Source of the DNA: Penicillus capitatus | Taxonomy: Eukaryota > Plantae > Chlorophyta | Length of the DNA stretch: 64,000 bases | NCBI GenBank assembly: GCA_965649825.1 | Contig: OZ287702.1 | Location: forward strand, 124,001-188,000 | Direction: 5' to 3' | Shown: positions 29,676 to 62,114 of the stretch, in pieces | Position numbering within the stretch: the first letter of the stretch is position 1 | Layout of the letters: each line of letters starts with the position of its first letter | Position numbers and translations under genes: made by a program | The notes under the pieces: generated by a model | The model's database searches: none | Told to the model about the DNA's origin: nothing | What the model saw: the letters and a program-made list of their open reading frames with translations, nothing else

Positions 29676-31621
29676 TCATGTCCAGAAGACGATCTTGCCT
29701 GCCTGATCGCACGAGACCAGTCGTTCATCTGCCCAGGCTGTCGCGACAACAGGTTTTGTGTGGATAGGACTGACGAGTTTCTGTGCCAACTTGGATCGTG
29801 ATCCATCGGATCTCCAGATCATCACTTTTCCGTTGTTGCTGCCCACGGCAATGAGCTGCTCGTCTCGACTCACGTCAATGGAGCATTTTGCCCCTCCCAT
29901 GGAACTGGCGGTCCCTATGGTAAACTGAGGATCCTCGAATGTCTCCACAATGGCATCGCTACGTAGATCGAGCGTTTTGATTCGGCTGTCTTTCCCAGCC
30001 GTCAGCAAGAGATGCGAACTCATAGGAAAGGGGCAAAGAGAAACAATGGCATCGTTGTGGAGAACGGGACGCTCGAAAGACGCTTCGGAAGTACGGGCAT
30101 CCCAAATCTTGAGACTTCCTTTGGAGTGTCCAGAAATGACGATGTTTCCGCTTGAGGAGTAGCAGACAGCATTTGTCCACTCCTTGTACTTGATCTCACG
30201 ATTCTGGATCTGATAACCGCGATTCAAATCCCAGAAACGAATATACCGATCTTCGCTGCAGCTCACTGCTTTGTCTGCGTTCCCTGGATCACACGCCACG
30301 CAGTTGACGCTGCGAGAACAGCCAGTCATGACATGAGAGTTCTGCCCACTCGATGTCTGCCAAACACGTATAGTCTTGTCCGCTCCAGCTCCGAGAACGG
30401 CAGCTGCATTAGATGTAAAGCTCACATCCCGTACGCCCTCCATCATGCCTCTTGCAATGAACTGTACGGTGAGTGATATTGGATCCCATACCAGCAGGTG
30501 CTTGTCAGCGCCGCCAGTGGCAACGAGGTGTCCAGAGAACGTAGAAGTGGCACTTGTACAGCCTCCGTGATGATTCATGTGCCCTTCGTGCGAGTCTGTG
30601 GGTATCGAGATCTGTGCGTCTTTCCATGGAACACGCTCTTCCTCTTCCTCACCCTCCAGTACAACAAAGCCTCCATCCGTTGATGTTCTGGTGCGAGCCA
30701 ATGAACTGTGATTCAGTTTTTGTCCGTCCCTTATCTCGATGAGAAGAACATCGAGGGCTTGAAGTGCCTTATCCGTGTCGCCTCTGTCGATCAAACGAGC
30801 GCAAGATGCCAGGCGTTTCGAGAAGGGATGCTGTTTTCGCTTCCATGGCAGAAAGGGGCCAGAATCTTGTTGAAGCTCGCGTTCGAGATCTAACTGATTC
30901 CGAATCCTTTCAGCTTCTGCTAAGCTTCGTTGCACCATCTCCTCCATCGTCGTCACCTCCTATCACACAGCATTCAGAAACAGTCCTTGTGAAGCAGCCC
31001 ATCGAAGGACCTGCCATTTCTCCAACATGGCTGTCTTGTCTGATTTTATGCGATCCACGAGGTTGCGGTTTTCTTCCTCCACTTGTCTAAGCTTACTCCA
31101 CATCTCTTCGACCTCTTCTTTGCTGGTCTGCATCTCCGAAAAGAGTAGAGACTTGGCTGTCTCCACTTCTGCGAGGCGTTTTTCGAGGGATGCCTTTTCG
31201 CTTTGTAATTGCTCTATCTGTGCTGCGGCTTGACGACTGGTTTCTATCTCTTCGGTTAACGAAGCCGCCATTATCTCTTTCTCTTTCAACAGGGCTGTTT
31301 TCTCCTGGACGGCCTCATCGTATTCACGTCGGATGTCTTCCTGAGCATGGGCCACCTGTCACAATGAAATCGCAATATAAATCAATCACCACATAGACAG
31401 CAGAACGGCACTTTTTGATTCAAGCTGGAGATGGTGTGCTCTTTGTCCTCACACTCATCTCGGAGCTCATCGTTCTCTTTGTTGAGCTGCATGACGCGGA
31501 TTTCAAGGTCAAGGCTTTTTTCGACTGCTATTTGATAGTCTTCTATCACGGCGTGTGTCGCCTCCCATTTCTCCCGAACGGCTCGAAGCTGCTTGAGCAC
31601 ATCGGTCTGTGACGACATCAT
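29676..31621 (-). CDS. ATG16: Autophagy protein 16 (coiled coil + WD40)
   Basis: Long coiled coil with EEENRNLVDRI, followed by a seven-bladed WD40 region (HHGG...ATGGADK; SCSEDRYIRFWDL; LLTAGKD; IAVGSNNGKVMIW). Confidence 0.8.
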
Positions 31622-31772
31622 TCGATAAGTCTTTTTGTACGACACTTTCGTTTGGGAAGTCAAGACGTCGTGCGGTTTGGCCGTTGTATCGATCTCCGTA
31701 CCAAAGATGTCGACGCAACCGACAACGGAGGTGCGATTGGGCATCCGTCGGAAAAAAGAGGGACGCATCCAA

Positions 31773-34700
31773 ATGTCTGTGTCGCAGAGGAAACGAAAAC
31801 TGATGCCTCTCGAGATTCTGGATGCTCGACAAATGCACGAAAGCGATGATGTCTCTGACGCGAATGCACACACGCCTCGTTCGTGTCGTTCCGCGTCGAT
31901 CGATTCGCCAACGAGGACGCCAAAGACTCGACGATTCTTTTCCGAAAGCAAGCGCCAACGTAAGAGCCCCCGATCCACTCCATTTCTCCCCTGTGCTGTG
32001 ATCGCGGCGTCGTGTTGTGCTCAGAAAGGGAGATGTCGATCGATGAGGAAGCGCTGTCCGCATTGCATGTATTGACAGAGTCTCCCGTGTGTTCCGATCG
32101 CACATACATTTGATTCATGACGTCCTGTCACGTTCAGGTGAATCAGGACAACATCCAGAGCGATGACGTGACCAAGAGTCTGCGAAGTATCTCTTGTCCA
32201 CTGCTCGAGCACAGAAGGCCTAGAGGTGTGAAACGTAGAGTTGAAACTCGATGCCGCATTTTTCTCAGTGGAGAAAAGTGTGAAACGAGAGGTGACAAGA
32301 AAGGTCAGAGCGGTAAGCATTTCACACAAACACATCATGATAGAAATGGCGTTTGTAGGAGAGTAAGATGTATCAGAAGACAGTGCATGGGATTCGTCCG
32401 AAGAAGGAATTGATCGCAGAGCGCCTTGCCGTTCACCTGGCAGAACAGACATCGTACTTCGTCTACGACAACGCTTCGATGTTCAGCATCTTTGCAGGGC
32501 CGAGAAGAAAGAAATGATTGACAACACAAGTATTGAAGAGTGCAAGGTAGCTTGTGTTCTGAACACCTGCAGTGGATCTGAATCTGCCATCGATAGGATG
32601 ACACAGTACGAAGAGGGCTATATCGTTGTGTGGTGTCATCTATTGAGCGTGCAGCCCGTCCACATCCTGTTACTGTGACAGCAACGCTGTTAGAAACGGT
32701 CGAGTCTAGCCGGTGCTTAAAAAATGAGAAGTTCGTTGACTGTGTGACGCAGGGAGAGCCGCTCATCTGCGAGCTCCATGATGGATGGAAGGCGACACCT
32801 GTGGAAGAAGGCGATACCATACATCTCATCAGTACCTTAGTCGATCGCGACGGGACATGGCACACTTGCATTGATCTTCATGATGGCTTCTTGATCCTCT
32901 GTCCCGATATTTTGATCTCTGGTCAGCCGTCTCTGTTTTGCAAAAGTGTGACAATTCGATGAGGAACAGGATCGCAAGTGCCAGTGGGTAACAATTGCAT
33001 TCGACGGGCATATCTGTCGGAGAGAATTGCAGAGAGAAGACCGATTCATCACAGTGCTGTTATGGGAAACATCATGCACAAAGTGATGCAGGTATAGACG
33101 AGATTCGCTGCGAACAGCGTTGTCACGTGTTATGGTGTTACAAGGACTGTCTCAAGAGATATGTACCGTACAGAGGCGAGAGCCTGGACGTGCAAGATAT
33201 TGTTCGGCAGACAATCGATGCTTCGAGTCTTTCTCTATTTGAGAGCGGCAAGATAGAGACAGACGCACAGGAATTTGTAAACAGCCGACTGGTTTATCTC
33301 CATCAGTGGCTCACAGAGTTTGCTTCTTCAAAAAGTCATTTCTCACTCCTCTTCTGCACACTAAGGGATGCATTCCATTCAGGTGTTGATGATAAAACGC
33401 GGGTTATCGAGGTAGTGGATATCGAAGAGTGCATTTGGGCGCCGCAATATGGTTTGAAAGGACGCATTGATGCTAGTCTCTCGATCACAGCGCCACGATC
33501 TCGTCGCTCAGCCAAAAGGCATAGCTCAACTGTTAGTTCATCTTTGTACTCCTGCTATCCGGCCTCCTCTTCGGAATCTGACCGTCCGCAAAGCATCGGC
33601 AGAATGCTGCATCCATCAGGAGATGCATCGAAAGAAAGTGATCAGATGGTGATTCCTATGGAATTCAAGACAGGCAAACCATACTTCACACACACTGCTC
33701 AGGTAGATACCATAAAACATCCGACAATGATATCGACCCTGTGTACGTGACAGCTTCTGTTGTACTTGCTGTTGATGGAGACACGGTATCGCAAGGAAGT
33801 GGATACGGCGTGTCTTTGGTATGTGGATCGACCCAAAGAGATGGAAACCATATCGATGCGCAAGGCAGATATGGACAGTTTGATTCAAGCACGCAATTTC
33901 TATGCCGCTTATCTGAAGCACGACGGCATGAAGCTGCCAGAGATGTTGATGAACACTCGCACATGTCAACGATGTCCCTTCCAAGCAGAATGCGCCGTTC
34001 TTCACAAAGTTCCCTCTCAGCAACACTATGTGCATGACAGATCGCACAACTGTTTTCTAGACATTTGAAAACGGGACTGAATGTTCTTCCGGGATGGGTC
34101 CAGCATTTGAATCCCTAACAAGTCACGTCACAGAAGACGGTGCTGCGTTCCTCTTACGATGGCTGACAGCTCTGGATCACGAATACTCTGAGGAACATTC
34201 CAAGCTGTCTTTCATTTGGCATCCAAATGAAGAGCGTTGCCGTCATGCAGGAGTACCTGGCCTCAGAAATCTAGTACTCCAGGTCAGACATCGTCAAGAT
34301 CGAAACGCCGCTTACTCTTGTCATGTGCAGCGTGTGACTGCTGAGGGGGTCGGTTGGCTGTATCATTTCTCAGAAGTTGCTGGACAGGAGAACTTTGCCG
34401 TCGATGATTTCGTGATTGTCAGCATCGAAGACGACCAAATTGGCATCTTTAAAGGGCACATCCACACTGCCACGCCCGTAATCCAAAACCAGAGATTCTT
34501 GAGTGTGCTCGTGTTTTGCATGGACAGAATGCTGTCTCTGTCTTGGCAGACGTGCGTTTGCCTACAAAATGGGAAGACACGCAGTTCAGGTGGAGAGTCA
34601 ACAAGTACTTCTCGACCAAATCAGCCAACACACAGCGAAGCAACATTCTCGAACTCGTCACATCGACGGCGCCATCGATCCATACACTCAGAGAGCTCAT

Positions 34701-36312
34701 CATTGATTTGAAGGCGCCGATTTCGTGCACAGACACACAGGTGACACAATTCACAGAAATGGATAATCATGAAGTGAGCAGCATGGTATGCAGGCGGATC
34801 CAGAGAAGAAAGCAACGACCTTAGCAGCCTGTACATCTGGGCTAAACGATGACCAGTGTCAAGCGATTCAGCGAATTCTAGAGAGGCCACAGTACTGTCT
34901 CGTTCATGGAATGCCAGGTTCAGGAAAGACATCTACCATTGTACAGGCCATCAAGGTTTCCATCGTCCAATGCTCTTTTCGACAGTGGCATTGAGGTTTT
35001 TACAGGCGCTAGTAACTTTAGGGCATTCCGTTTTGGTTTCCTCTCACACCCACAGTGCCGTAGATAATATATTAGTTCGACTGAAATGCATCGGTGTGGA
35101 TTTCATCAGAATCGGAACAGCAGCAAGTGTTCATAGAGAGATCCAAGACCATGTACTAGGAGCAGACGGTCTTTACAGTGACACCTCGACGGCAGCTTTA
35201 GATCGAGTGAGGAAAGAGATTAAAGTGGTACTGGCAAACCAGATGCACAAAAACATGTCCACTGAGATCGCCCGTTGTTCGAGGTTGGCGTGACATGTCT
35301 GGGTGTTCAGCATCCGCTTCTCAAGAAGATGCAATTCGATGTGTGTATTGTGGATGAAGCATGTCAGACAGTATTGCCTTCGTTGCTGGGTCCTCTTCTC
35401 CTTGCTCATTCATTCATTCTGGTGGGTGATCCCATGCAGCTGCCTCCTCTCGTTTCCAGTCCAAAGGCGCTCGAATGGAAACTGGATGAGACACTCTTTG
35501 CCATTCTACAGTCTGCACATCCAGATGTCTGTGCCTCTATGCCATGCTTCTTTCTGTGAAGGTTTTCTGTGTTTCTAGGCAATCGTGCCATTGAGTTTTC
35601 AATATCGCATGTGCCAAGAAATTACAGAACTGGCAAACCATCTTGTCTACAACCATCAACTGAGATGTGCACGTCCGGATGTCGCCGAACAGAAGCTGCA
35701 CTTACTGCACGATCATCCGCAGGGGCAAACTGTATGGCCGGTATGTCCATGAGAGATATCTCTTTCTGCATGTCACACTTCCTGTGCAGTTTCTCCATTC
35801 TGATAAACGTTTAGCTTTTGTGGATACTTCCCAAGTTCATTGCTACGAATCGAAGTATCGTGGATCGTTCTACAACAAAAAGGAATGCAAGTTTGTCATC
35901 AATATTGTCCGTCTTCTGCATGCTTGTGGCGTTTCTTCGAATGACATTGGCATTATTTCGCCCTACAATCGCCAGATTCAGTGGATCAGAGACAGTCTGC
36001 CACAAGAAGCATCTGCAGTAGAGGTCTCGACAGTCGACAAATTTCAAGGCCGTGACAAACCGTGCATCATTGTCTCCTTCGTGCGTTCAAACCCAGAAGC
36101 GTACATATCTCACTCTTTCTCGCACATCTGAATCATGACATAGGAACGCGGGAACACTGCTGGAGGATTGGAGACGCATCAATGTTTCGATGACACGTGC
36201 ACGGGCAAAACTCATTTTTGTAGGCGATACATGCACCTTGAATTCTGTTCCTTTTTTGGCCAGAATCGTCAATTACATGAAAGAGAGAGATATCATTTGG
36301 CAACTCTGTTAA
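31773..36312 (+). CDS. DNA2: DNA2 nuclease/helicase, multi-exon (start uncertain, 31707 alternative)
   Basis: DIEECIWAPQYGLKGRIDAS, PMEFKTGK, CQRCPFQAEC (Fe-S), HGMPGSGKTSTI, IVDEACQ, LVGDPMQLPP, STVDKFQGRDK, RRINVSMTRARAKL; stop TAA at 36310-36312. Confidence 0.95.
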
Positions 36313-36870
36313 ATGATGATTTGGTGCATTTGTGCGAAACGTGTCGATCTCTCGCGTCGATGTCGGCCGAAGTTCCAAACGGCCACGACAATGGCTCTCC
36401 GACATTTCCACTAGGTGCCACAGACTTGGTGCGCGACACGATATTGCACAGAGTCGTCAATAGCGGACGCTTTGTAGGGGATCTTCTCCGAAGACCCTGT
36501 TTTGCGTGCTCATGAAGAGCATCTGAGGTATCGCTGGAATCGATTCTGCCATATCCGAGAGCGCATTCAGCAAGAGGAGGGCGGTTTGCGGCAATTTGCG
36601 CGAAGCTACACGAAGTTTGGACTCCGTCACCATGGACATTGCATGGTGTACAGAGAGTGGGCACCCGCTGCTGTCGATGCACAAATGGTTGGAGATTTCA
36701 ACAACTGGAATGGAACACAGATGCAGCGCGATGCCTTTGGTGTTTGGTCGTGTACATTGCCAAGTATTGTCACACATACTTTGTGTGACGCCCTGATCAC
36801 ACATCGCAGATCTCAACGGGGAACCTGCGATCCCGCACCGTTCGAAGTACAAGATTCGGTTGAAGCATCG
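36301..36870 (+). pseudogene. 5' fragment of branching-enzyme gene (left copy of a 570-bp direct duplication)
   Basis: Nearly identical to 46692-47261 (two substitutions seen). Breaks off at ...TTGAAGCATCG and fuses out of frame to ZDS sequence. Confidence 0.92.
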
Positions 36871-38037
36871 TGACGGCCGTGCGGGAATCTCCAATGCAGG
36901 ACGCCTCGCCCAAAGACGCCCCGTTGCGGTCACTGTTCCCTGATGAACCCTCCCCTCCTTCGCCCAACAGTCCCAAACTCAAAGTCGCCATCATCGGAGC
37001 GGGACTGGCCGGTCTCTCCACTGCCGTCGAACTTCTCGATCAAGGGTCTTTTTTCGCACTCTCATTGCGTCGTGTCACACCAAGTGTCTCAGACATGAGG
37101 TGGAGATCTTCGAAGGCAGGAAATGGATTGGGGGCAAGCTGGCATCCTTCGTGGACAAGGATGGCAATCACATCGAGGTATCCAGATGATGTCGGTATCT
37201 TGCCCGTGCTCTCACTGATGGAGTGCTACAGTGGGGCTTGCATGTGTTCTTCGGTTGCTACTTCAATCTGTTTCGCCTCATGGCAAAGTGCGGCGTTCTG
37301 GAAAACCTAGAACTGAAGGAACACATCCATACCTTCATCAACAAAGGGGGAGACGTCCGAGGACTCGATTTTCGCTTCGAGATCAACGGACGGAGAATCG
37401 GAGCGCCATTCCACGGTAGAGGCCGCCGCTCTACTGCAGGGGATACACTAAACAGTGCTTCTGGCTCTTTTCAGGCCTCAAGGCTTTCTTCTCGACAGAT
37501 CAATTGAGTCCTGCCGACAAAGTAGCCAATTCTGTGGCCCTGGGGACCTCACCCATTGTCCGGGCGCTGTTCGATCCGGAAGGAGGCATGCGTGATGTCC
37601 GTGCCTTGGACAACATGAGTTTCACAGAGTGGTTCACCAGCCATGGTGGATCACGAGCATCCATTGACCGTCTCTGGGACCCCATAGGTGTGATATCTCT
37701 GAATCTGCTGCATCTGTCTGCTGATGGTGTGGATGCCAGCCTATGCGTTGGGCTTCCTGGACTGTGATCACATTTCGGCTCGATGCATGTTGTCCATTTT
37801 CCTCTTCTTTGCGACAAAGACTGATGCGTCGGTGTTGCGACTGTTGAACGGATCTCCTGCCGAGCGGCTGTTGAAGCCCATTGTTAACTACATTGCTTCC
37901 AAAGGCGGAACCATTCACACTCGACGAGGATGCAGGTCCCTCACTCTTTTTGTTGTGAGAACGGAGATAAGAGGAAACAAAAACGCCTTTTTCTTTTTAA
38001 AACAAACAGGTATCTTTACAATGGAGAATGTCCTTTT

Positions 38038-39767
38038 TTAAATTAACGACGGTTCTAAGGCTTTATCTGCAGCCAGCCATTCGAGATCATCTGTTGGATC
38101 TGCTGTAACCGCTGCATCTGTTTCAACATGGGCCCATCCACCTTCATGCGCGTAATATTTCCGAAGCTGAGACGAATGCGCCAAGAATTGTCCTCCGGCC
38201 TCCGCCGGATTAGCCACGATCCATGTCGATCTTGAATGATGTGCCAATATTCTGAGAGGACCATACCATGAACGCGCCAGTTTTCCTTGATTTGCTCGTG
38301 CTGTTGGGTCGTAGACTAACACTTCATCACCCACTTGCAGTGGCCTTGACAATCGATGGTGTTTCCGGTTGTACAGGGCCTTCATGTAATCCTTTGCTTG
38401 TCTTTGGACGTCGATGGCATGTTCTCTTTCTGATCGTACTGTATTCCACGGCAGTCGTTGACGATTTCGACTAAGTCCATATGCGAGTGTGATAGGCGTT
38501 GAATCAATGCCTCGATGCCAACTCGTGTTGTAAGCGTCTACCACTTCCTGCAGCTTTTCTGGCCATTCCTCCACGGCTTCGTCGACTGTCCGACGCAGGC
38601 GATTGAGTAATGTTCCGATCACTCGTTCGGCAAGACCAATTCCTTGGGGGTAGTAACTTGGAGTGGGCCTGAGTTCTATTCTGCGCCTGAGTATCCAGCG
38701 TTGAAACTTCGCGCTCTGCCATACTTGTCCATGATCAACTGCGATTATTTTGGGCTGTCTGGGAAATTGGTGCGTCCAACGCTCAAGAAGAGGGAGAATG
38801 TGAGCCACACCAGGTCTGTTGATTACTCCAGCCTTGCACCATCGCGTTGCGGCGTCGACCAAAACCAAAAGGTAGTTCCCATCGCGGAATGGGCCAGCTA
38901 TGTCCATGTACATCTTGTCTGCGAAATTGTGTATGATCTCTTCTCCGGGAGCATCTCTGTACTGTCGGGGTGCGTGAAACTGGCACTGCTCACACTTTTC
39001 CACAAAAGAAGGGACATCCTCTGTCAATCCTGGCCACGTTCCGTAGTCGAGCTCGACATTCTTTTTTGTTTTCTCGAAACCCCAGTGTCCTTGATGCCCT
39101 CGACGGATGATCATCTCCCTGCCGTGGACATCGGGTCTCTCTTGGGGGATTGGCTGTACTAATTGTATCCTGGGCTTCCCTCTTGCTGTTTCAATCCCAC
39201 GTGACAGTAAGTCAGCTCCTTGATTACTCTCGCCGGGGACAAAGGCAAATTCGACATTTTCCTCGTTCGCGAGGAGATAGGCGATCAATCTGGCCACACG
39301 CACATCATGTGTGACTAATTCGCCCCTTTGTAACTGTTCCACGAGTGCACGGTTGTCGTTGAAGACTGCTGTGGGGCAAGTACCGCGCAAAGGCTTCGTC
39401 TTCTTCAGTGCATACACCAATCCTCTGAGTTCCCCGAGGTAGCTGCTCGATCTCTGGTCCTCGAGTTTGCTCGAACCTATGTCGAGCAGTTGTTTCTCGC
39501 CACGTCCCGATGACGGAAGTCCGAAAAGTACGTAGCCGATATGAGAACCCGACCAATCTGAGTAGAGTTCGTACCGGACGAACTCTCGATTGGCAAGTGC
39601 CACTTTCTCACACCGACTTAGTGCCTCAGAGAAAGCCTCATAAGTTGTACGTTGTGTCTCCGCCCACCAGTCTTCATCCGCGACATTGCATTTGGCCTGA
39701 GTGAGTCGATTGCGCAGTGGCATCAAGAGTTTCTCAAGGTGCGGTACATGAGTGCGCACAAAGGAAA
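38038..39767 (-). CDS. pol 3' part: RT connection, RNase H, integrase
   Basis: ELYSDWSG...[10 protein letters not shown]...NDNRAL; HQGH...CEQC; [19 protein letters not shown]; WYGP. The stop codon lies inside the 3' LTR. Confidence 0.93.
38133..38145 (-). other. Polypurine tract of the outer Ty3/gypsy element
   Basis: GAAGGTGGATGGG on the minus strand, 4 nt before the 3' LTR. Confidence 0.7.
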
Positions 39768-41425
39768 TGTCGGATATGCAGATGTCACGTCGCCCGCCAC
39801 AGCCATCAGAACGGTTGCGTCGGCGAAGAACCACCCTGGCGCACTGACCATCGGTCGCGACGGGTGTTCGCCTTTGACCTGCTGTTGCAATAACGGTAGG
39901 CTGATGGTTGTTGAACGTGGGCAGGAGTTCTCAGCTGTTGCTCTTGAGGTTAGGGAATCCCCAACCACCGCGAGTACTTAAACGCGACAGTTTCATGTAA
40001 TCCAACTCGTATTCCTGTGTTCGCGGTCTGAGCGTGCGTTCACGTCGTCGTTCGCGCTGAGAGCCGATTCGTGTGAAGCGCATCGTTACAGCGATTCCCG
40101 ACATCTGGTGGACCTCCGGGGCACTGTCGAACGTTTTCTTTCGTTTCTGACAGACCATGCGCATCGAGTCGACACCCTGCCCCGTTACGACGGACGCGGC
40201 GACCCTATGAGACGGGTCAGCAGAACGAACGCATTCGTTCTCTCGACGCGAGTGGATGGCGGCACGGGGACACGAGCGGACGAAGCGGACGGAGAAACCG
40301 CCAGGGTGGCGGATGGGCAAACCGACAGACGCCAATGCGGTGTGGCTGGCCAGGCGAGCGAAGCATGCTCGAAGCCAGAAAACAGTGCGTTCGACTCTGG
40401 CAGCAAGTCTGAAGTGGCTGCTGCGGTGGAGGAGTCGATGCACAGCCTCGGCGGTTACGTTTGCGACCGCGAAGAAAACGACAGGAAGAACTGCGTTTTG
40501 GCGCTGCGTATCCAGAGACCCGAGGAACGTCACATCAATGTCGAGCCGGAGCCAGAAGTGCTTTCGGCCGTCACATCTCATTTCATTGAAAACGTATCCT
40601 GTTTTGCGATGACCGTCCGATATACGGTCGAATACGAACCCTCTGCGGTTACGACAGCGACCGCGAAGAAGACGACAGAAAAGATTGCGTTTTCACGCTA
40701 CGCAATCAGAAACCTGACGAAGTTCATTGTTGCTCCGAGCAGATGCCAGAAGTGCGCTCGGATATCCGATTTCGTTTCCTTGAGAACACCGACTGTTATC
40801 ACGCTGACCGTTCGACGCATGGTCAGAACATCTTGGATGAAGCTTGGACTGCGCCAATGGAGGAGTCGCGACGCTGGCGATCGCGACGGCGCTACACGGA
40901 AACCGACGACGAAGTTATGACGAACCACGTCGACGAAGTTTTCGATGCTGGCTGAAAGATTCCGTTTGACAGAGGTCCGTGTCAACAGACTTGAAGACCC
41001 GTCTGTTCTGCCTCGTCCCGACTGTGTGTTTTTCGTTCTGTCTGTCACTCGAGCATGAGGACATTATGCCACGAGTGAGGAGGAGTCACTGTCGGATATG
41101 CAGATGTCACGTCGCCCGCCACAGCCATCAGAACGGTTGCGTCGGCGAAGAACCACCCTGGCGCACTGACCATCGGTCGCGACGGGTGTTCGCCTTTGAC
41201 CTGCTGTTGCAATAACGGTAGGCTGATGGTTGTTGAACGTGGGCAGGAGTTCTCAGCTGTTGCTCTTGAGGTTAGGGAATCCCCAACCACCGCGAGTACT
41301 TAAACGCGACAGTTTCATGTAATCCAACTCGTATTCCTGTGTTCGCGGTCTGAGCGTGCGTTCACGTCGTCGTTCGCGCTGAGAGCCGATTCGTGTGAAG
41401 CGCATCGTTACAGCGATTCCCGACA
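39768..41425 (+). mobile_element. Nested non-autonomous LTR element (TRIM/LARD-like), 1658 bp
   Basis: Two identical 336-bp repeats (39768-40103, 41090-41425) with TGTCGG...CCGACA ends; TSD GGAAA at 39763-39767 and 41426-41430; PBS TGGTGGACCTCCGGGG at 40106; PPT GAGTGAGGAGGAG at 41073-41085; no pol motifs inside. Confidence 0.93.
40106..40121 (+). other. Primer-binding site of the nested element, tRNA-Ala-like
   Basis: Complement ...CCCCGGAGGUCCACCA has CCA, A73 and U70, as in the G3:U70 acceptor of tRNA-Ala. The tRNA identity is inferred. Confidence 0.6.
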
Positions 41426-41430
41426 GGAAA

Positions 41431-42770
41431 GAATACCGATAGCCCTCTCTAAGGACTTCCGATTGTTGATCGGTCCAAGCTGGGTGTGCTTCTCACTCAA
41501 GTAAGGAGCCAGTGTGCGAGTCCCCTCGCAGATTTCATGCCTCAAGTACTGAATACTCTTGCGAAGAAGACGCAGCTTATCTTTATTGACCTTCAATCCA
41601 TATCGTGCCAACCGACCAAAAATCATTCGCAAATTTCGATTGTGTTCTTCGACATCATCGCCCCCAACAAGAAGGTCATCAGCGTACTGCACATGAGGTA
41701 TTCCCCGGAGAACATAAGCAATGCGCTCTGCGAAAAGTGTGGGTGACCAATTAAAACCCTGAGGCAGCCGGTTATAAAAAAAGTGCCGCGTACCGAAGGA
41801 AAAACCAAAAAACGGTCTCATATCCAAGGAAAGTGGGATGGAAAAGAAGCCATCCTTTAAGTCGATGATGCTGTAAATCCGCCACGAGGAGGGAATCGAG
41901 TTAAGAGCCCGCCGGGTATCCACTTGTCTCATACCGTCATTGGGAAAATATGCGTTGAGGGCCCTGAAGTCATTTGTGATACGTACCTCGCCATTCGGCT
42001 TGGAGACTGGATTGAGTGGACTAAGATAGATCCTTTCCGCGGGGCTGCACTCGGTGATGTATCCCTTGACAATGTACTCCTCCAACAGCGACTCAACCGC
42101 CGTGGTCTTGATCACTTGGTCCGTCCGAAGCGATGTCCGTCTGCCTCGATCCAATGACTTCGGGGCGTTGCATGGGACTTCCGCCAACGACACTTGGAGC
42201 TTTTTCATTGGAGCCGTGATGGGGTGTTGTGCAAGGTCGAAAACTGTGGGGAAATCTTGCAGAAGCATTGATGTAAGCCGCTTCTCATCGTCGCACAGAT
42301 TTCCTTCGGTGGTAGAGACTTGTACTGGAGGGAGTTTCTTTACTTCGCAACGGTCCACGTTGAAGAAACGGATGACTGCAGACCGTGACGAAATTACTGT
42401 CACGACATCTCGAGCGTTAAACACGTTTAGTGTTACGCATCCGCTCTTGCCAATTGCGTACGACGCAAGTGTTCCGGCGATGTTGACAGCGCATGCTGTG
42501 AAAATGGGACCGCGAGCTTCAATCTTCCAAGGAAGCTTGAATTGTTTCCATTCTCGTGGCTGTAGAAAGTGCGAACGTGCAAAAGGGATGCACACGGTGC
42601 GATTGGAAGACTTCTGCACGGCGCCACTGGCCGGGACATCCCAGAGTTGAGTGAGAATGAGTGTTGATTTGTCGCATGTCGCCTCAGGGCCGACGGGCTG
42701 CGACTGTCCCGCCGACCCCGTCAGTTTGACGACACGAGCGGGAGGATGTTCCCGTCTTGTTTTGCTTCAA
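41431..42770 (-). CDS. pol 5' part: spacer/dUTPase-like region + reverse transcriptase
   Basis: SPLNPVSKPNGEVRITNDFRALN, IDLKDGFFSIPL, YNRLPQGFNWSP, YADDLLVGG. Joins in frame to the RH-IN ORF once the nested element is removed. Confidence 0.92.
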
Positions 42771-42842
42771 ACTTCGGGAAGTCGATGGAGATCTTCAGAG
42801 TGCGGAGTCCTGGGAATCCGAGTAGTGGCAGCTGCGTGTTCT

Positions 42843-44357
42843 TCACCACCACAATGTCATGAAGGTCCTGCAACTACCAAGCCGGATTTTTGTATAGAAA
42901 GCGCCTTCCGATTGTTGAGTTGAGCCATCAAACCCAGTGAGCGTCATTCTACGTGAACGATCAATTCGAATTCTCTCTTCGATGGGAATCAATGCTTCTG
43001 GTAGTATATTAACGCTCCCGCCCGAGTCCAACAGCATCTCCACGTCCTTTTGCTTCAATTGTGGCATATATGCCTTGACTCTCATCTGCGCAGTTGATGC
43101 CGCCGCAGTCGCAAGTACTGCATTTGCGACCTCTCCTGATGGCATTCCCTCCTCCAGATGGCGATACTCGCCTCCGTCGTTGTCGTCTACGACGGCCTCG
43201 TTGACGCCGAATGGACGTTTTGAAGGATTTCCGCGATTGAGGGGACAATCAACCTTCCAATGCCCCATTTTCTTGCATCGAGGGCATGGCGTCGTTGGAA
43301 GTGTCGTGCCTCCCTTTGCGTTGTTGTTGCGTTGTGGCCGTGTGAAGCTCGGTTTCTGTGCTTCCGACGTGTTGCCCTTGTCAAGGAACATCCAGTATTG
43401 AAATTCTTGCTTAAGCGTCTTGGTAACCACCTCGAAAGTCAAGTCTTCTAGAGCGTACTGTCGAAACAGTGCTTGCTGCTGTCTTTCCAATGATTGAAGA
43501 AGAATTTGAATTGCCCTTCGATCATCCAACAGCCCAGGTCTTGAACGAACCAATGACTTGAAGTTGCTCACATGAGATAGAATATCTTCGGCTGTCCTTG
43601 TCTTGGGTTTCATCCCGCGCAAGTGGTTGGTGAGAACTGTCCTGTCATCATCGACTTTAACAATCATTTCTTCCAAGAACTCTCCAATCTTGCACCACAA
43701 ACCATCCAGCACCAACCGACTTCCATCGCTCATCTGCTCTGACGCCGGAAGGGTGTCCAACCCTGTTTCTTCCTTGACAAGTTGTTGTATTCTCGTGTGA
43801 ACACCTCGTCCAAACGGATCTGACCGATCAAAATGTGACAGGAGCACTCGAATTCTTGCGCTGACGGACTGTTCTGTGAACTCGAGACCTTTGAAGATGT
43901 CTTCATGCAGGCTTTGTGACCACTGTCGCAGTGCTGGCGGTTTGTCTGACACGGTGGCTGCGGTTGAGTGGTGAGGGAGGGGCTGTGCCGTGCGTGGTGT
44001 TTCTTGTGATTGGCCCGAGCTCGTGCGAATCCTCCCACGAGCAAGCAACTCCCAATCACGCCATACGGCAATCGCACAGCGCCACACAACCACCGCGGTG
44101 AGCACCCAGATAACCGCCGCATTCTCGTGGAGCGTGTTCAGGGCACGCTGCAACTCATACAAAGCGCCGTCGAGATAATAATACTCATACGTCAGAACAC
44201 GCCAGGTATGGAGAACCGACCTTGTATGGAACGTATAAGTCCATACCGTCGGAACCTCTGCGCCACGTAGGATCCATCTCGTCGTGAAGTAGAGAAAGGC
44301 GATGCCGATAAACAGTTTAAAGGAGGACCAAAACACTTGGCCTCGCTGCGAAACCAT
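42843..44357 (-). CDS. gag-protease ORF of the Ty3/gypsy element
   Basis: 504-aa ORF with hydrophobic N-terminus, CX2CX4HX4C knuckle and aspartic protease DSG motif. The protease C-terminal half continues in the -1 frame (PLLGFPGLRTLKISID). Confidence 0.9.
   Translation of the reverse strand: MVSQRGQVFWSSFKLFIGIAFLYFTTRWILRGAEVPTVWTYTFHTRSVLHTWRVLTYEYYYLDGALYELQRALNTLHENAAVIWVLTAVVVWRCAIAVWRDWELLARGRIRTSSGQSQETPRTAQPLPHHSTAATVSDKPPALRQWSQSLHEDIFKGLEFTEQSVSARIRVLLSHFDRSDPFGRGVHTRIQQLVKEETGLDTLPASEQMSDGSRLVLDGLWCKIGEFLEEMIVKVDDDRTVLTNHLRGMKPKTRTAEDILSHVSNFKSLVRSRPGLLDDRRAIQILLQSLERQQQALFRQYALEDLTFEVVTKTLKQEFQYWMFLDKGNTSEAQKPSFTRPQRNNNAKGGTTLPTTPCPRCKKMGHWKVDCPLNRGNPSKRPFGVNEAVVDDNDGGEYRHLEEGMPSGEVANAVLATAAASTAQMRVKAYMPQLKQKDVEMLLDSGGSVNILPEALIPIEERIRIDRSRRMTLTGFDGSTQQSEGAFYTKIRLGSCRTFMTLWW
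44341..44356 (-). other. PBS of the outer element, degenerate tRNA-iMet-like, overlapping the gag start
   Basis: TGGTTTCGCAGCGAGG directly after the 5' LTR; 12/16 identity to the plant iMet PBS TGGTATCAGAGCCAGG. Confidence 0.6.
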
Positions 44358-44829
44358 GTTGTGAGAACGGAGATAAGAGGAAACAAAAACGCCTTTTTCT
44401 TTTTAAAACAAACAGGTATCTTTACAATGGAGAATGTCCTTTTTTAAATTAACGACGGTTCTAAGGCTTTATCTGCAGCCAGCCATTCGAGATCATCTGT
44501 TGGATCTGCTGTAACCGCTGCATCTGCTTCAACACTTTTCGTCCCTCTTTTCGGTGCCCAATCCATTTTCATGACAGAAAGATCTTGTATGATTACCAAG
44601 AGAATGGATATCCGATTGTGACGGGTTTACAGATGGCGGACGGTTCCGTGGTCAAGGCTGATGTATATTGCTATGTGATAGTCTTCTATCACATAGCATG
44701 TGTTGCCTCCCATTTCGCCCGAACGGCTCGAAGCTGGTTAAGCACATCGGGTATTTGATGGCATCATTCGCCATCTCATGAAAAATCTTAACGCGTGTGA
44801 AGTTCTGTAGGAAGATTCTTGTATATCCT

Positions 44830-45075
44830 CGCGACGCGACGACACCCCAGGACGACGTGCCAAGCCGCTATTTTTCGGAGACGCGACGCGACGACACCCC
44901 AGGACGACGTGCCAAGCCGCTATTTTTCGGAGACGCGACGCGACGACACCCCATGACGACTCAGCAAGCGGAGAGACCGACCAAGACGACTCAGCAAGCC
45001 GACGCGTCGTTCATACGGAAAGACGCGACGAAGACGACTACCCAAGCCGACGCAGGAGTTCATACGGAGAGACGC
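44830..45075 (+). repeat. 52-bp tandem repeat (starts 44830, 44882, 44934) decaying into degenerate gacgac...caagc monomers
   Basis: cgcgacgcgacgacaccccaggacgacgtgccaagccgctatttttcggaga repeated exactly twice plus a partial copy; ~1.3 copies in unit 2 near 45740-45808. Confidence 0.9.
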
Positions 45076-45082
45076 TAGCCAA

Positions 45083-45445
45083 ATGGAAGGTCTGAGTCTT
45101 ACCCAAAAGACGAGATTGCAGTACATTCTAGACGACTTTTTGTCGTTCATTGACCTTTGGTTTTCTTCACTGACACACTCGCGAAGTTTACCCGATTTCT
45201 TTACCGGCATGCCTGTTGATCGAACCTTGAAATTCTTTATGTTCTGTCGATCGTTTACAGCTACTGCGAGAAAGGCAGAGACGTGGACGATGATCGAGTG
45301 CAGTTTCAAGTCATCAATGATCAGTAACGGTTTAATAACTGCCCCGGAGGTCCACCAGTCTGACAGGGATGCGAGAGACTCTGGCGCGCCGCGAACGCGC
45401 CGACGCGTGTGCGAAAACGGAGGGACAGTGTTGAGTCAAAGCTGA
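45083..45445 (+). CDS. Unknown 120-aa protein of unit 1
   Basis: Open ATG ORF whose first ~85 aa align at protein level with the disrupted paralog at 45811 (FLSFIDLWFSSLTHSRSLPDF vs VLAFIDIWFSAVSHSRSLPSF). Confidence 0.65.
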   Translation: MEGLSLTQKTRLQYILDDFLSFIDLWFSSLTHSRSLPDFFTGMPVDRTLKFFMFCRSFTATARKAETWTMIECSFKSSMISNGLITAPEVHQSDRDARDSGAPRTRRRVCENGGTVLSQS

Positions 45446-45810
45446 GACTACTTGCAAGATGCGTCCAGTCAATTAATACCCTCGGCGCCCGCGGACCGCT
45501 GTCATGTCAGGAGGCGGACAGTCTGTCCGGTCTGCGGGGCCGCAACCGTTGTCGTACACCCGTCAGTGGTCAAGGCTGATGTATATTGCTATGTGATAGT
45601 CTTCTATCACATAGCATGTGTTGCCTCCCATTTCGCCCGAACGGCTCGAAGCTGGTTAAGCACATCGGGTATTTGATGGCATCATTCGCCATCCCATAAA
45701 AAAAATTTAACGCGTGTGAAGTTCTGTAGGAAGATTTTTCGGAGACGCGAAGCGACGACGCCCCAGGACGACGTGCCAAGCCGCTATTTTTCAGAGACGC
45801 GAAGCGACAA

Positions 45811-46121
45811 ATGGAAGGCACTGTTTTGAATCCCACCGAGAAAAAAAATTAGATTACGTATTAGAAGACGTACTAGCGTTCATTGATATTTGGTTTTCAG
45901 CAGTCTCACACAGCCGCAGTTTACCGAGTTTTCTAGACGCGTTGCCAATCGAATAGATGCTTAAGTTCTTCATATTTTATCGTTCATTTGTAGCCGCGTC
46001 GCGACAAGCAACAACATGGACTGCTATCGAGTGCTCTCTTAAAGAACTGATGATTAGCAACGGATTTATAAACGATGAACCAACTGACGAGTATCGTAGA
46101 CGACTCGCGCGCCGCGGTTAG
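45811..46121 (+). pseudogene. Disrupted paralog of the 45083 ORF
   Basis: MEGTVLNPTEKK, frameshift in an A8 run at 45841, in-frame TAG at 45954, otherwise colinear (LKFF.F.RSF, TWT.IECS, MISNG). Confidence 0.7.
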
Positions 46122-46750
46122 CGCGAACGCGCAGCGTCGAACAGAGGAGACAACCTGAGCAAATGCAAAAGCTACAGGCAGGGCGTTACGTCAGCTTAAG
46201 TACCCTCGGCACCCGCGGACCCCTGTCACGTCAGGAAGCGGACACCCTGTCCGGTCCGCGGGGCCGTAAACGTTATCGCGTACCCGTCACCAACACATGA
46301 CTGCAATTTTCGGCGAATAACTATGTTATTAAAAGAATACTGTTCGAACAACGCGCCAAAATCTATGGCTCGACTGATTTCATTCAACACTATTACTGAA
46401 TCTGTGTCTATTGTTACATCACAACAAGCAGCCTCCTCCTCCTCTGTTGGCTCTGTTATAGAATAATCGACTAAGTTTAATAAATGAGGTATTGGCCATG
46501 TCGCGTCGTTGGTGAACAAACACACGCATTAGCGGAAGACTTTAAAACAGAATGACGTAAACAACGCAATTGTCCCCCTTTTATAGTGCTAGGGTTTTGA
46601 TGTGACATGTAGTAGGTTCTGATGTGACTTCCCTTATGCCGTCGGGATGCCTTCATTGTGCTCATTTAGTCTGACAGAAACAGAAAGATATCAACTCTGT
46701 TAAATGATGATTTGGTGCATTTGTGCTAAACGTGTCGATCTATCGCGTCG

Positions 46751-49149
46751 ATGTCGGCCGAAGTTCCAAACGGCCACGACAATGGCTCTCCGACATTTCC
46801 ACTAGGTGCCACAGACTTGGTGCGCGACACGATATTGCACAGAGTCGTCAATAGCGGACGCTTTGTAGGGGATCTTCTCCGAAGACCCTGTTTTGCGTGC
46901 TCATGAAGAGCATCTGAGGTATCGCTGGAATCGATTCTGCCATATCCGAGAGCGCATTCAGCAAGAGGAGGGCGGTTTGCGGCAATTTGCGCGAAGCTAC
47001 ACGAAGTTTGGACTCCGTCACCATGGACATTGCATGGTGTACAGAGAGTGGGCACCCGCTGCTGTCGATGCACAAATGGTTGGAGATTTCAACAACTGGA
47101 ATGGAACACAGATGCAGCGCGATGCCTTTGGTGTTTGGTCGTGTACATTGCCAAGTATTGTCACACATACTTTGTGTGACGCCCTGATCACACATCGCAG
47201 ATCTCAACGGGGAACCTGCGATCCCGCACCGTTCGAAGTACAAGATTCGGTTGAAGCATCGAGATGGCCGCTGGATCGATGTTCTCTCTGCCTGGGCAAC
47301 GTATGCCATCCAAGACACGACGAGAATGGATGGACCCTTCGATGCGGTGTATTGGGATCCGCCTCTCCCTTATGAATGGTCTCGAAGATGATGTGGGATG
47401 GGATGTGCTTTGAAAATGGTTGCGGTGTCTTAGGAAACATCCTCATCCTGAACAGCCACGTTCACTTACTATCTACGAAGCCCATGTGGGCATGAGTTCG
47501 GAGAAGCCAGAAGTGGCGGGCTATCGATACTTTGCAGGTGGGCTGTCGCTTCGCTGGTGCATTCCACGGACTGGTGTGTATGCACTTAGAGAATGTCATT
47601 CCCCATATTGTGCATCAAGGATACAACACACTGCAGCTGATGGCAGTTCAAGAACACCCGTTCTACGGATCGTGTGGCTATCACGTCACGAATCTCTTCG
47701 CTGTGAGCAGCCGTTCCGGAACGCCTGAGGATCTGAAGTATCTGATCGACACAGCACACAGCTGCGGTCTTTGTGTGATCCTGGACGCCGTCCACAGCCA
47801 TATCTCCAAGAACACTGCCGATGGTCTGGCTGGATTCGACATGGATCCGCACGAAGACGGTAACTACTTCAAAACAGGCAAGAGAGGATACCACGAAGTG
47901 TGGGACAGTCGACTGCTAAATTATCAAAATTGGGAAGTCCTGCGATTGCTGCTGTCCAATTTACAGTGGTGGATGGAGGAGTATCATTTCGATGGATTTC
48001 GCTTTGATGGGGTGACCTCCATGCTCTACCATCACCACGGAATCAATATGCATTTCTCTGGAGCGTATGAGGAGTACTTCAGCATGTCCACAGATGTGGA
48101 TGCTGTTGTCTACCTGATGCTGGCCAACGCACTTGTGCACGCCATCTCTCCACATGCCATGACGCTTGCAGAGGACATATCCGGAATGCCGACCCTCTGC
48201 AGACCCGTTGAGCGGGGAGGCGTGGGATTTGACTACAGGTACGAAACGGGAGAGGGAGGCGATTTGCGTGAGACGTCTGATCTGCAGAATGGCGATGGGC
48301 ATTCCAGAGATGTGGATTCGTACGCTGCAGGAAAGCGAGGATCATAAGTGGTCCCTTGATGCCATCGTCAAAGCACTGCAGAATCGCAGAAGAGCTGAAA
48401 AAACGATTGCCTATGTGGAATGCCACGATCAGTGCATGGTGGGAGGCATCACGCTGGCTTTTCGCTTGATGGGCACAGAAATGTGGACCAACATGAGCGC
48501 CTTGTTCCCTATGTCTGCCAACATCAAGCGCGGCATCGCCCTCCACAAGACAATCCGCCTACTGACCTTCGTTCTGGGGGGAAACGCATGGCTGAATTTC
48601 ATGGGAAACGAATTCGGACATCCAGATTGGGTGGATTTCCCACGGCAAATTTTTCCCAAACAGCCATAGGCACATTGACGTGGTTGACTGCTTAGGGAAG
48701 GCAATGGTTGGAGTCACGATCGTTGTCGACGGTTATGGCATCTGAATCGGACATCCCATCTCCGTTACAAGAGCTTGGCCCGATGGGACAAAGCCATGAT
48801 GCAGCTGGAGAAGGATTTTCATATTCTGGATCCCATGCATGCCATCTTCTGTTCCATCCAAGAATCCACTCGGACTATCGTCGTTGAACGCGGTCCGCTG
48901 CTCTGTCTCTTCAATTTCTCCTCCACTTGTGACCACACCCATCTGTCTGTGGGCGTACATTTTCCGCACACGTATCGCTTTCTACTGAGCTCAGATGCCG
49001 CGGAGTTTGATGGAGATGCTCGGTTCTCGCTAAAAGAGGTGTTGTTCCGTGCTGTGGTGGATGGACAGCATGGATGGAACCGAGATCGACCCTACGCATT
49101 ACGCATTTCGCTGGCAGCGCGTTCTTGTACAGTTCTATCCATGTTATAG
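46751..49149 (+). CDS. SBE1: 1,4-alpha-glucan branching enzyme, BE1 type (GH13), multi-exon, intact copy
   Basis: YREWAPAA...[79 protein letters not shown]. Confidence 0.95.
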
Positions 49150-57610: not shown

Positions 57611-61946
<4,336 letters not shown>

Positions 61947-62114
61947 GACGATCTGACGATCCGTTTTCAAATGACGCTCAGAGGCAGAACGCCTCGGAAT
62001 CGTCACTGTCACATCAACAAACCGTTAACCATACTTAAATATCATCACTACAGACGACAGGAGACATGTAAAGTGTCCGTTCTATGGAGAAACGGGGAGA
62101 TTCAGGTTTGAGAA

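Follow-up and report, generated by a model that had tools for sequence, protein, structure and literature searches.

A multi-step insertion between the Dna2 and SBE genes of Penicillus capitatus, probably built by microhomology-type repair and retrotransposition

In the window (the whole 64,000-nt stretch of Penicillus capitatus DNA analysed here), the genes for Dna2 and SBE (starch-branching enzyme), whose native spacer is only 47 nt, are separated by a patchwork that includes fragments related to neighbouring genes and is bracketed by a direct duplication. Was this patchwork stitched together at once, as an initial annotation proposed, or did it accumulate? The anatomical facts stated in that annotation all held, but a retrotransposon, a second ATG16-like copy and two nested duplication-plus-filler structures had gone unseen. 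With these included, we consider it probable that the span of 36.3-47.3 kb is a lineage-specific structural variant that arose in at least four steps, through microhomology-type repair and retrotransposition (Table 1).

Table 1. Components of the insertion and their related segments in the window.
Feature	Coordinates	Strand	Description
ATG16-like gene exon segment	31507..31624	-	homologue of the old fragment captured in the units
Copy A	36279..36870	+	Dna2 last codons, 47-nt spacer, SBE 5' region (CBM48 exon)
J1, SBE to inverted ZDS	36869..36879		11-nt microhomeology block, parents 9/11 identical
ZDS copy part 1	36869..~37950/37953	+	reverse complement of ~60719/60722-61803, about 98.8/98.9%
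Ty3/gypsy-type LTR retrotransposon	37951..44534	-	6,584 bp; LTRs, target duplication, pol/gag domains
Nested event in retrotransposon	39768..41425		perfect 336-bp direct duplication, 39768-40103 and 41090-41425, around filler
ZDS copy part 2	~44532/44535..44668	+	reverse complement of 60593-~60726/60729, 95.6%; ends at J2, 44668/44669
Tandem unit 1	44645..45562	+	24-nt ZDS tail, ATG16-derived piece to ~44770, repeats, ORF, palindromic end
Tandem unit 2	45563..46285	+	5' 250 nt like unit 1, body diverged
Right-hand filler (Xr)	46286..46676	+	no source in the window
Copy A'	46677..47261	+	runs on into intact SBE gene
Source segment in ZDS gene	60593..61803	-	intact gene, ~59782-62012

The core of the duplication (36301-36870 and 46692-47261) was accurate to the base, with two mismatches in the alignment; self-BLAST matched 36279-36879 to 46677-47270, and to the left of the core lie 15 further nt of imperfect homology with a 7-nt indel. 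The spacing between A and A' is 9,821 bp. Copy A contains the Dna2 stop codon (36310-36312) and a putative SBE start codon at 36360, and is truncated by a TGA at 36871-36873, while the SBE gene at A' begins with an ATG at 46751 and has catalytic exons to ~49149. Two related genomes (L023 and L024) have a single copy of A (9074-9686), which aligns to both window copies and is immediately flanked by colinear Dna2 on its upstream side and by SBE on its downstream side. This single-copy empty site shows that the region is a genuine insertion, as originally annotated, and that the bracketing sequence, the Dna2 tail and SBE 5' region, was duplicated. An independent 24× contig from the same sample as the window (L022; ~1.5% divergent) carries the right-hand junction between filler and A' with shared derived characters. 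In A', the Dna2-tail remnant has lost 7 nt and carries a G>C substitution, two derived changes that also occur in L022, and L022 suggests that the duplication originally started at ~36256-36262. An attempt to read the wider structure of L022 as a tandem duplication failed.

Divergence between A and A' is 0.35%, as against a distance of 1.5% between the window and L022, and the two copies have a common derived base that is missing in L022; these observations point to gene conversion as having kept A and A' almost identical. The differences between them sit in the non-functional copy of the Dna2 tail and the interior is clean, as gene conversion would leave it.

The inverted ZDS fragment of the initial annotation was recovered by self-BLAST in two parts, with its source 14-24 kb away. 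Exon ORFs of the source gene all match TIGR02732 (zeta-carotene desaturase), and the copy comprises the 5' half of the gene. The source genes have stayed intact, and the copy follows its multi-exon source colinearly; the piece is thus an inverted copy made at the DNA level, with a gain in copy number. At ~1.2% divergence, it is roughly equidistant from the source in the window and from L022. At J1, the parents read GCATCG-AGATGGCCG (SBE) and CG-CGACGGCCG (ZDS) and the product reads GCATCG-TGACGGCCG, in which base 36871 (T) belongs to neither parent; the 8/10 microhomology described earlier holds here and corresponds to the 9/11 block. At J2, the 10-mer GGTCAAGGCT (44650-44659) is also found at 31507 in the ATG16-like gene, in exact register as claimed, and is native to both the ZDS and the ATG16-like genes as well as present in the ATG16-like gene of relatives. 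The crossover lies 9 nt past this 10-mer, an offset that simple primer-template models do not predict. An older right junction, kept on L022, shows TTGGCC (6 nt), and junctions of L022 itself show GCTGG (5 nt) and ATC (3 nt); microhomology as described for FoSTeS/MMBIR was thus found at J1, J2, the older right junction and the L022 junctions. The proposal of template switching fared well in that the microhomology and microhomeology are as for template switching or alternative end joining, but poorly as a single stitching event.

NAHR was also considered and rejected, the parental sequences having only 3-11 nt in common per junction and no long repeats. In a test for excess mutation near the junctions, point mutations proved significantly clustered. 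In ZDS, changes private to the source and changes private to L022 fall in the same sub-regions as these clusters, and the clustering therefore appears to be a regional rate effect. Once regional and conversion effects are allowed for, the non-parental T at 36871 may be the only junction-associated mutation signal.

Two-thirds of the insert (6.6 of 9.8 kb) consists of the retrotransposon, which splits the ZDS copy. Its LTRs (178 bp; 37951-38128 and 44357-44534) have TG…CA ends and a single mismatch (1/178), and the 5-bp target duplication CTTTT is present at 37946-37950 and 44535-44539, while the uninterrupted source gene has one CTTTT, i.e., the unoccupied site, at ~60722. The element is a separate, later integration with its own target duplication. 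ORFs for a gag zinc knuckle (42843-44357), RT (41408-42619) and RNase H plus integrase (38038-39834) were found, with pol split across several frames. The Pfam order on the minus strand is zf-CCHC, RVT_1, RVT_3 (RNase H-like), Integrase_H2C2 and rve, i.e., gag-RT-RNase H-integrase; Pfam revealed neither a protease nor a chromodomain. Both this domain order and the combination of LTRs, target duplication and empty site are those of Ty3/gypsy. A PBS-like sequence, TGGTTTCGCAGCGAGG, which starts with TGG, follows the 5' LTR, and a purine-rich PPT-like sequence is also there; the window contains no tRNA genes with which to compare the PBS. No sister copy with identical ORFs occurs in the assembly, and the closest relative (67% identical in the integrase) comes from another sample.

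Within the retrotransposon, the two copies of the 336-bp duplication (0/336 mismatches) enclose 986 bp of filler (40104-41089), for which no template was found in the window or the fetched loci. The start of this filler (40105-40123), 1 nt from the junction, reproduces 45340-45358 perfectly over 19 nt in inverted orientation, and is longer than any match in shuffles. Being 100% identical and known as assembled sequence, the 336-bp duplication could be an assembly error.

The ATG16 fragment, for which a homologous gene ~5 kb upstream had been noted, is indeed homologous to that gene, but only at ~83% and in two copies, and the gene name is plausible though unproven: the gene encodes a coiled-coil plus WD40 and scored 18.6 bits for Pfam ATG16 versus a cut-off of 33.7. 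Positions 31507-31624 match 44650-44770 and 45568-45688 at 83.5% with two indels. Per 100 nt, the captured piece shows ~11 changes of its own, and at one position it retains the ancestral G that has been replaced by C in the neighbouring gene. Given ~16% divergence, indels and the ancestral base, as against 1.2% for the ZDS copy, the ATG16-like piece is far older than the ZDS copy and did not come from the neighbouring gene at the time of the ZDS copying. As a separate observation, a 6-bp quasi-palindrome in the ATG16-like copy has become, through clusters of changes, a perfect hairpin of 13 bp (44669-44698; stability from -5.3 to -12.9 kcal/mol), and these clusters also create a second 6-bp palindrome.

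This piece belongs to two tandem units. Unit 1 has 52-bp and 48-bp tandem repeats (44830-45075), a 120-aa ORF (45083-45445) and a 90-nt 3' end rich in palindromes. The beginning of unit 2 (45563-45808) is 93-98% identical to 44645-44892, including a 21-nt ZDS tail, while the unit bodies are ~62-66% identical; as an alternative to a ~250-bp duplication, the units could form a tandem pair of ancient origin whose 5' parts underwent gene conversion. The ORF of unit 2 has an in-frame stop, and an intact version (P0004) is present on L022. The unit ORF had no transposase-like or other Pfam match, and no dispersed family was found, P0004 being itself the same unit on L022. To the right, 46289-46498 is 99% common to L022, and 46499-46676 (178 nt) is window-specific and stands in place of 17 nt of Dna2 tail kept by L022. 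No template was identified for this 178-nt patch, nor, in the window or the fetched loci, for the ~1.9 kb of filler as a whole (44771-46676), and a templated origin is conjectural for most of the insert apart from the retrotransposon. The layout of a duplication around filler is seen twice more in the locus, in the tandem units and in the retrotransposon interior.

Since the divergences of the components range from 0% (the 336-bp duplication) through 1/178 (LTRs), ~1.2% (ZDS) and ~16% (ATG16-like piece) to ~38% (unit bodies), several events are needed. From the observed anatomy, empty site, microhomologies and relative ages, we infer a repair pathway and a number and order of events. The first step would have followed the split from the related species and preceded that from the 24× genome, when the 5' part of SBE suffered a break or a stalled fork whose repair proceeded through microhomology-primed copying or joining, by MMBIR/FoSTeS-type template switching or polymerase-theta-type end joining. 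Its product would have been a ~0.6 kb duplication of native sequence (Dna2 tail, spacer and SBE 5' region) and ~3.2 kb of filler, in which a 1.2-kb inverted DNA copy of the ZDS 5' half, from its source 14 kb downstream, was joined via the 10-nt microhomology to pre-existing unit DNA with the old ATG16-derived fragment; the filler would then have been rejoined to the Dna2 tail via TTGGCC. Second, the Ty3/gypsy element would have entered the ZDS copy, generating its 5-bp target duplication. A third step, of uncertain order, may have made or remodelled the two tandem units through a ~250-bp duplication around ~670 bp, and put 178 nt in place of 17 nt at the right junction. The most recent step, to judge by its 0 mismatches, would be the 336-bp duplication around 986 bp inside the retrotransposon, with a 19-nt patch templated 5 kb away. 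The most likely origin is repeated repair by microhomology-mediated template switching or end joining, together with a single retrotransposition, and each individual step may itself be of FoSTeS/MMBIR type; sequence alone lacks the power to separate MMBIR, TMEJ, staggered-break fill-in and Campbell-type circle integration.

In Campbell-type integration, an extrachromosomal circle carrying a copy of A and the patchwork would have recombined homologously with the chromosomal A to give A-X-A'. This is the exact outcome of a single crossover with a circle, the locus holds three such cases, and the same process would serve for the 336-bp and 250-bp duplications. We nevertheless think it unlikely, because the circle would still need prior microhomology-mediated assembly, so that J1, J2 and TTGGCC are required in any case; at its left end, A' departs from A through changes typical of a junction, where a homologous exchange should have been clean; and exact-ORF look-ups returned no circle or second copy. 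Quite improbable is the model of the initial annotation, one FoSTeS/MMBIR event running from SBE to inverted ZDS, to the neighbouring ATG16 gene and back to SBE. The three recognisable pieces do have homologues <25 kb away in cis, and microhomology is present at J1 and J2, but the unequal divergences largely refute the model: the ATG16-like piece, with its ancestral base, is far more divergent than the ZDS copy, the unit bodies are older than the event and the 336-bp duplication is younger. Moreover, the 6.6-kb retrotransposon integrated separately and 1.9 kb has no local template.

Mis-joining of haplotypes or strains in the metagenome assembly, which could have created the duplication, is very improbable. 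The same assembly does hold the 1.5%-divergent relative at 24×, and the internal 336-bp duplication is 100% identical. However, A and A' carry paralogue-specific substitutions and indels, the joins occur at microhomology and not at long shared repeats, and the retrotransposon lies with a clean target duplication inside a ZDS copy whose source gene is uninterrupted. Local repeats (≤1.2 kb) are far below the 10-kb structure, the window contig has a coverage of 344x, and the recurrence of the right-hand junction on L022 also argues against an artefact. Equally remote is capture of the ZDS and ATG16 fragments by a transposon of the Pack-MULE, Helitron or CACTA-like kind, or their import by the unit acting as a mobile element, which the series of gene fragments beside repeated units with palindromic 3' ends might recall, but for which terminal inverted repeats at candidate boundaries never exceeded shuffle level, 5'-TC…CTRR-3' termini were absent there, no element terminus separates the ZDS copy from the SBE sequence that it directly adjoins, the unit ORF and its distribution are as described above, and the 0.6-kb flanking duplication is unlike a transposase-type target duplication; Pack-MULE/Helitron-type capture thus failed its defining terminus tests.

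The insertion cut SBE off from everything upstream of -74: native upstream DNA is short, as noted earlier (~60 bp), but the figure is 74 nt, made up of the 47-nt spacer and the Dna2-tail remnant. Behind Dna2, a dead SBE-5'/ZDS-5' relic was left. It had been described as an SBE-ZDS chimera, and truncated SBE is indeed joined to ZDS, but there is no in-frame fusion; the junctional T gives rise to a TGA that is in frame with SBE, and the ZDS frame is a different one. The locus is a known and mechanistically ordinary kind of event, with no new mechanism or function. Its value is as a well-resolved natural case, documented by an empty site in an outgroup and an intermediate in a sister genome, of microhomology-mediated repair and retrotransposition remodelling a compact gene pair, and its lesson is that seeming one-step patchworks need to be dated piece by piece.

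Three nested duplication-plus-filler cases occur in 10 kb, with a related patch in the sister genome. That this lineage has a recurrent, characteristic process producing unusually long direct duplications (0.25-0.6 kb) around 0.7-3 kb of filler nonetheless seems quite improbable to us; possible causes would be widely staggered breaks capturing extrachromosomal DNA, or an unrecognised mobile agent, possibly one with very long target duplications and the units as cargo.

Compared with known systems, the retrotransposon agrees with Ty3/gypsy (Metaviridae-type) elements in its TG…CA LTRs, 5-bp target duplication, TGG-initiated PBS-like site, polypurine-like tract and gag(CCHC)-RT-RNase H-integrase order. 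It differs in its very short LTRs (178 bp), in having no Pfam protease or chromodomain, and in a pol that is frame-split and broken by the 1.3-kb duplication plus filler. Short template-switch or quasi-palindrome correction (Löytynoja & Goldman 2017, PMC5453318; PMC8604942) resembles the hairpin-perfecting clusters of the ATG16-like copy, although here both arms are changed, implying more than one switch or another ancestral state. The signatures of MMBIR (Hastings et al. 2009, PMC2621351) are matched by the retention of sources (copy-number gain), the insertion, for some of the pieces, of nearby segments in direct and inverted orientation, the 3-10 nt of microhomology or microhomeology and the non-parental junction base; the 9/11 of J1 is within the range published for microhomeology in a study of PLP1 (7-14 bp at 70-90% identity; PMC6902434). 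Copying from nearby fits ZDS (inverted, source intact) and the 19-nt patch, whereas ~1.9 kb and 0.99 kb of filler have no template. In contrast to FoSTeS/MMBIR cases, this is a fixed or near-fixed germline variant of a wild alga, known from sequence only; most of its filler has no identified template, its pieces differ so widely in age that it is not one event, and the J2 crossover is 9 nt off the microhomology. Tandem duplications with microhomology or templated insertions have been attributed to Pol theta in Arabidopsis tsk mutants (PMC13031928), and those of polymerase-theta type occur in BRCA1-deficient cells (PMC7368036). Relative to these, the fillers here are long (0.67-3.2 kb, where a few to tens of nucleotides would be usual) and the duplications themselves short (0.25-0.6 kb), but the direct duplication and the junctions with microhomology or short near-break inserts are the same, and the 19-nt inverted patch at 40105-40123, from 5 kb away, has the classic form.

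The locus holds a genuine duplication-insertion, built in several microhomology-mediated steps and later struck by a Ty3/gypsy element. In reverse complement, the window corresponds to positions 1,736,482-1,800,481 (derived coordinates) of ena:ERZ25074695:ctg340592_344x_l, a 6.93-Mb linear contig at 344× from a metagenome assembly, and its gene layout is compact, with short introns. The exon ORFs of the ZDS gene all matched TIGR02732, moving along the model from one ORF to the next and changing frame, which identifies a genuine plant-type ζ-carotene desaturase and hence the organism as a eukaryote that bears plastids. The true Dna2 C-terminus (…KERDIIWQLC-stop) ends at 36310-36312, within copy A of the duplicated segment, and the putative ATG of SBE, the starch-branching enzyme gene, lies 47 nt past the Dna2 stop. 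Rfam and tRNA scans over 29-63 kb gave no matches, and a metagenome scan for nearer relatives of the SBE 5′ region returned distant matches only (30-53% identity). Distant from the insertion, a tandem repeat of ~123-bp period lies at 3319-3525 (two to three copies, 94-98% identical).

Features of the locus, with divergence between copies where applicable
Feature	Position	Strand	Divergence	Basis or remark
Coiled-coil/WD40 gene (ATG16-like)	29.7-32 kb			Pfam; ATG16 domain match below threshold
Dna2	32995-36312			Pfam
A and A′, copies of the native Dna2-tail/SBE-5′ segment	36279-36870 and 46677-47261		2/570	core 36301-36870 = 46692-47261
J1, SBE/inverted-ZDS junction	36869-36879			
Inverted ZDS copy	36869-37950 + 44535-44668		~1.2% from source	source 60593-61803
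LTR retrotransposon	37951-44534	minus		6,584 bp; interrupts inverted ZDS copy
LTRs of retrotransposon			1/178	
336-bp duplication inside retrotransposon			0/336	
J2, ZDS/ATG16-like junction	44668/44669			
ATG16-like piece versus gene			~16% + two indels	
Units 1 and 2	44645-45562 and 45563-46285		~35% (bodies)	
Xr, right-hand filler	46286-46676			
SBE, CBM48/α-amylase branching enzyme	from 46751			Pfam

Self-comparison and alignment bore out the direct duplication described in the initial annotation: the core carries two mismatches, imperfect homology continues leftward from it to 36279/46677, and 9,821 bp separate the copies. Using SBE orthologues at ≥90% identity, we reached two related loci, L023 and L024, in another sample (ERZ26696514), which share 87-91% identity with the window and run colinear with it through zf-U1, the WD40 gene, Dna2, a single A, SBE and a kinase, on to a DEAD-box helicase; L023 9074-9686 aligns with A and A′ alike. 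Since these lineages have one copy of A, the window region is an insertion accompanied by a ~0.6-kb duplication, younger than the split from them. The empty site also fixes polarity, and thus the tandem units and the ZDS copy are not native here; a reading in which the units were native Dna2-SBE intergenic DNA, with only A and ZDS inserted, was thereby ruled out. L023 and L024 (180× and 175×) are 99.3% identical across 20.7 kb at almost equal coverage; they probably represent both haplotypes of a diploid, or a pair of co-occurring strains.

Less the retrotransposon and its target duplication, the insert amounts to 3,232 bp. It holds a single inverted, DNA-level copy of ZDS, then two tandem units, each consisting, in order, of a 21-24-nt ZDS tail, 118 nt derived from ATG16, 52-bp repeats, a small ORF and a palindrome-rich 3′ end, and then Xr, which had no match within the window. 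The 5′ ends of the units are 93-98% identical and their bodies 62-66% only. A word-indexed search with the unit ORF gave no matches, and an exhaustive HMMER search returned, apart from two low-complexity bacterial proteins that were discarded, only P0004, the unit's counterpart on L022 (a 61-kb, 24× contig of a sister genome in the window's own assembly); the ORF was therefore rejected as a gene family. Upstream of the unit 1 ORF (44830-45075) are two tandem arrays, one with 2.5 copies of a 52-mer (98% matches) and one with 2.2 copies of a 48-mer (83% matches), and about 1.3 copies only of the 52-mer occur in unit 2. The ATG16-derived copies at 44669-44698 and 45587-45616 differ from 31526-31553 by clustered changes (T>G, +AT, two G>A), through which the 6-bp quasi-palindrome of the native sequence has become a perfect 13-bp hairpin (DNA fold going from -5.3 to -12.9 kcal/mol, z = -6.7), and a second cluster forms GATGGC…GCCATC. 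These clusters look like short template-switch (quasi-palindrome correction) mutations.

The junctions have the microhomology first proposed for them. At J1 the microhomeology is 9/11. A T that neither parent has at this point yields TGA in the SBE frame, and ZDS runs past it in a frame other than that of SBE; as a result, no fusion protein is encoded. J2 makes use of GGTCAAGGCT, a native part of both ZDS and the ATG16-like gene, the relatives' copy included, and the crossover falls 9 nt beyond it. Around J1 and J2, and at the left end of A, the clustering of mismatches is significant. It was dropped as an argument for error-prone synthesis at the breakpoints, since a three-way comparison with L022 showed the same sub-regions to be fast-evolving in all lineages; at the A/A′ edge, an outgroup comparison placed the changes in the non-functional Dna2-tail copy.

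The retrotransposon has 178-bp LTRs with TG…CA termini, a TGG-initiated PBS-like site and a purine-rich PPT-like tract, and is flanked by a 5-bp duplication of its target, CTTTT; in the ZDS source gene this site is unoccupied. Its minus-strand domain order, gag(CCHC)-RT-RNase H-integrase, is the Ty3/gypsy arrangement. No protease domain was detected in it, and pol is split (38038-42619, minus): the RT ORF ends at 41408, where it has entered the 336-bp duplication by 16 nt, and the integrase-frame ORF lies in a different frame with a stop at 39931. The element, despite near-identical LTRs, is probably defective. No sister copies with identical ORFs occur elsewhere in the collection, and the 67% relative on locus L003 consists of no more than an RNase H/IN fragment. 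An unrelated second Ty3/gypsy-type element, apparently intact, lies on the window's chromosome at record ~1.702-1.708 Mb (locus L025, 11045-16308), with a single 926-aa ORF for protease, RT, RNase H and integrase, and adjoins a TRM5/TYW2-like methyltransferase gene; since the homologous L022 stretch lacks it, this insertion is polymorphic.

A duplication bracketing filler is nested three times, in A-X-A′, in the unit pair if so read, and within the retrotransposon, where a perfect 336-bp duplication encloses 986 bp of putatively foreign DNA. The latter opens with 19 nt that repeat 45340-45358 in inverted orientation, and none of 30 shuffles gave so long a match. This filler also holds a diverged (71%) 194-bp tandem repeat (40446-40620 vs 40640-40815) and an ORF of 270 aa that matched nothing in Pfam. 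One may likewise read the unit pair as a ~250-bp duplication, beginning 24 nt inside the ZDS copy, around ~670 bp of diverged paralogue.

Considering the unequal divergences of the components (see table), the pieces arrived at different times. The initial annotation had envisaged a patchwork of neighbouring genes, formed by FoSTeS/MMBIR or from a circular intermediate; its insertion with duplication and junction microhomology stand, and a joint arrival of the pieces does not. The ZDS copy, its source gene and the L022 ZDS are roughly equidistant (6-7, 10 and 10 private changes, respectively), and the ATG16-like piece retains an ancestral G where the window's ATG16-like gene has C. A and A′ have in common a derived base absent from L022 and diverge less than the two strains do, a sequence pattern that indicates gene conversion between them.

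Over the ZDS-DEAD-box stretch, identity between L022 and the window is 98.5%. The L022 DEAD-box gene is broken in motif VI and fused through GCTGG to the middle of an ATG16-like piece, followed by unit 2 (ORF intact), Xr (99% identical) and …GGTATTGGCC/AGAATC…, i.e., the Dna2 tail and left end of A; beyond this it joins through ATC to a locus ~37 kb past ZDS on the window's chromosome. A derived 7-nt deletion and G>C are common to A-left of L022 and A′, and A and the relatives are ancestral; therefore, the Xr/A′ junction predates the 1.5% split of the two genomes. L022 keeps an older form of the right junction, with 6-nt microhomology (TTGGCC) to 36256-36261; at the right junction of the window, 178 nt now stands in for 17 nt. 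The idea that L022 marks the join of a clean tandem duplication of ~42 kb was rejected, since the right half of L022 fits the expected locus, L025, for 1.8 kb only (96% and 91% identity) and then diverges. The helicase is truncated by unit DNA directly after motif VI (9880-9925), and either L022 is itself a partial duplicate or its genome has a second helicase copy. At the 3′ end of unit 2, ~210 nt rich in palindromes (46085-46294; flanked by ACCAAC direct repeats at 46079 and 46289) are precisely missing from L022 (10285-10296), where the unit ORF continues into 46297-46460 and encodes the 155-aa P0004; either L022 lost them by a microhomology deletion or the window gained them as a small insertion.

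Among other origins, Campbell-type integration of a circle is possible. An assembly artefact joining haplotypes is unlikely, since the Xr/A′ junction, with its shared derived changes, recurs on the independent L022 contig. Non-allelic homologous recombination (NAHR) fails because the junctions lack long homology, and transposon capture of gene fragments because TIR and Helitron terminus tests were negative. The junction features of the multi-step duplication-insertion match published definitions of microhomology/microhomeology-mediated template switching (PMC2621351; PMC6902434), and they also fit tandem duplications of Pol θ type that carry inserts at the junction (PMC13031928); the locus thus adds a fresh instance of already known processes.
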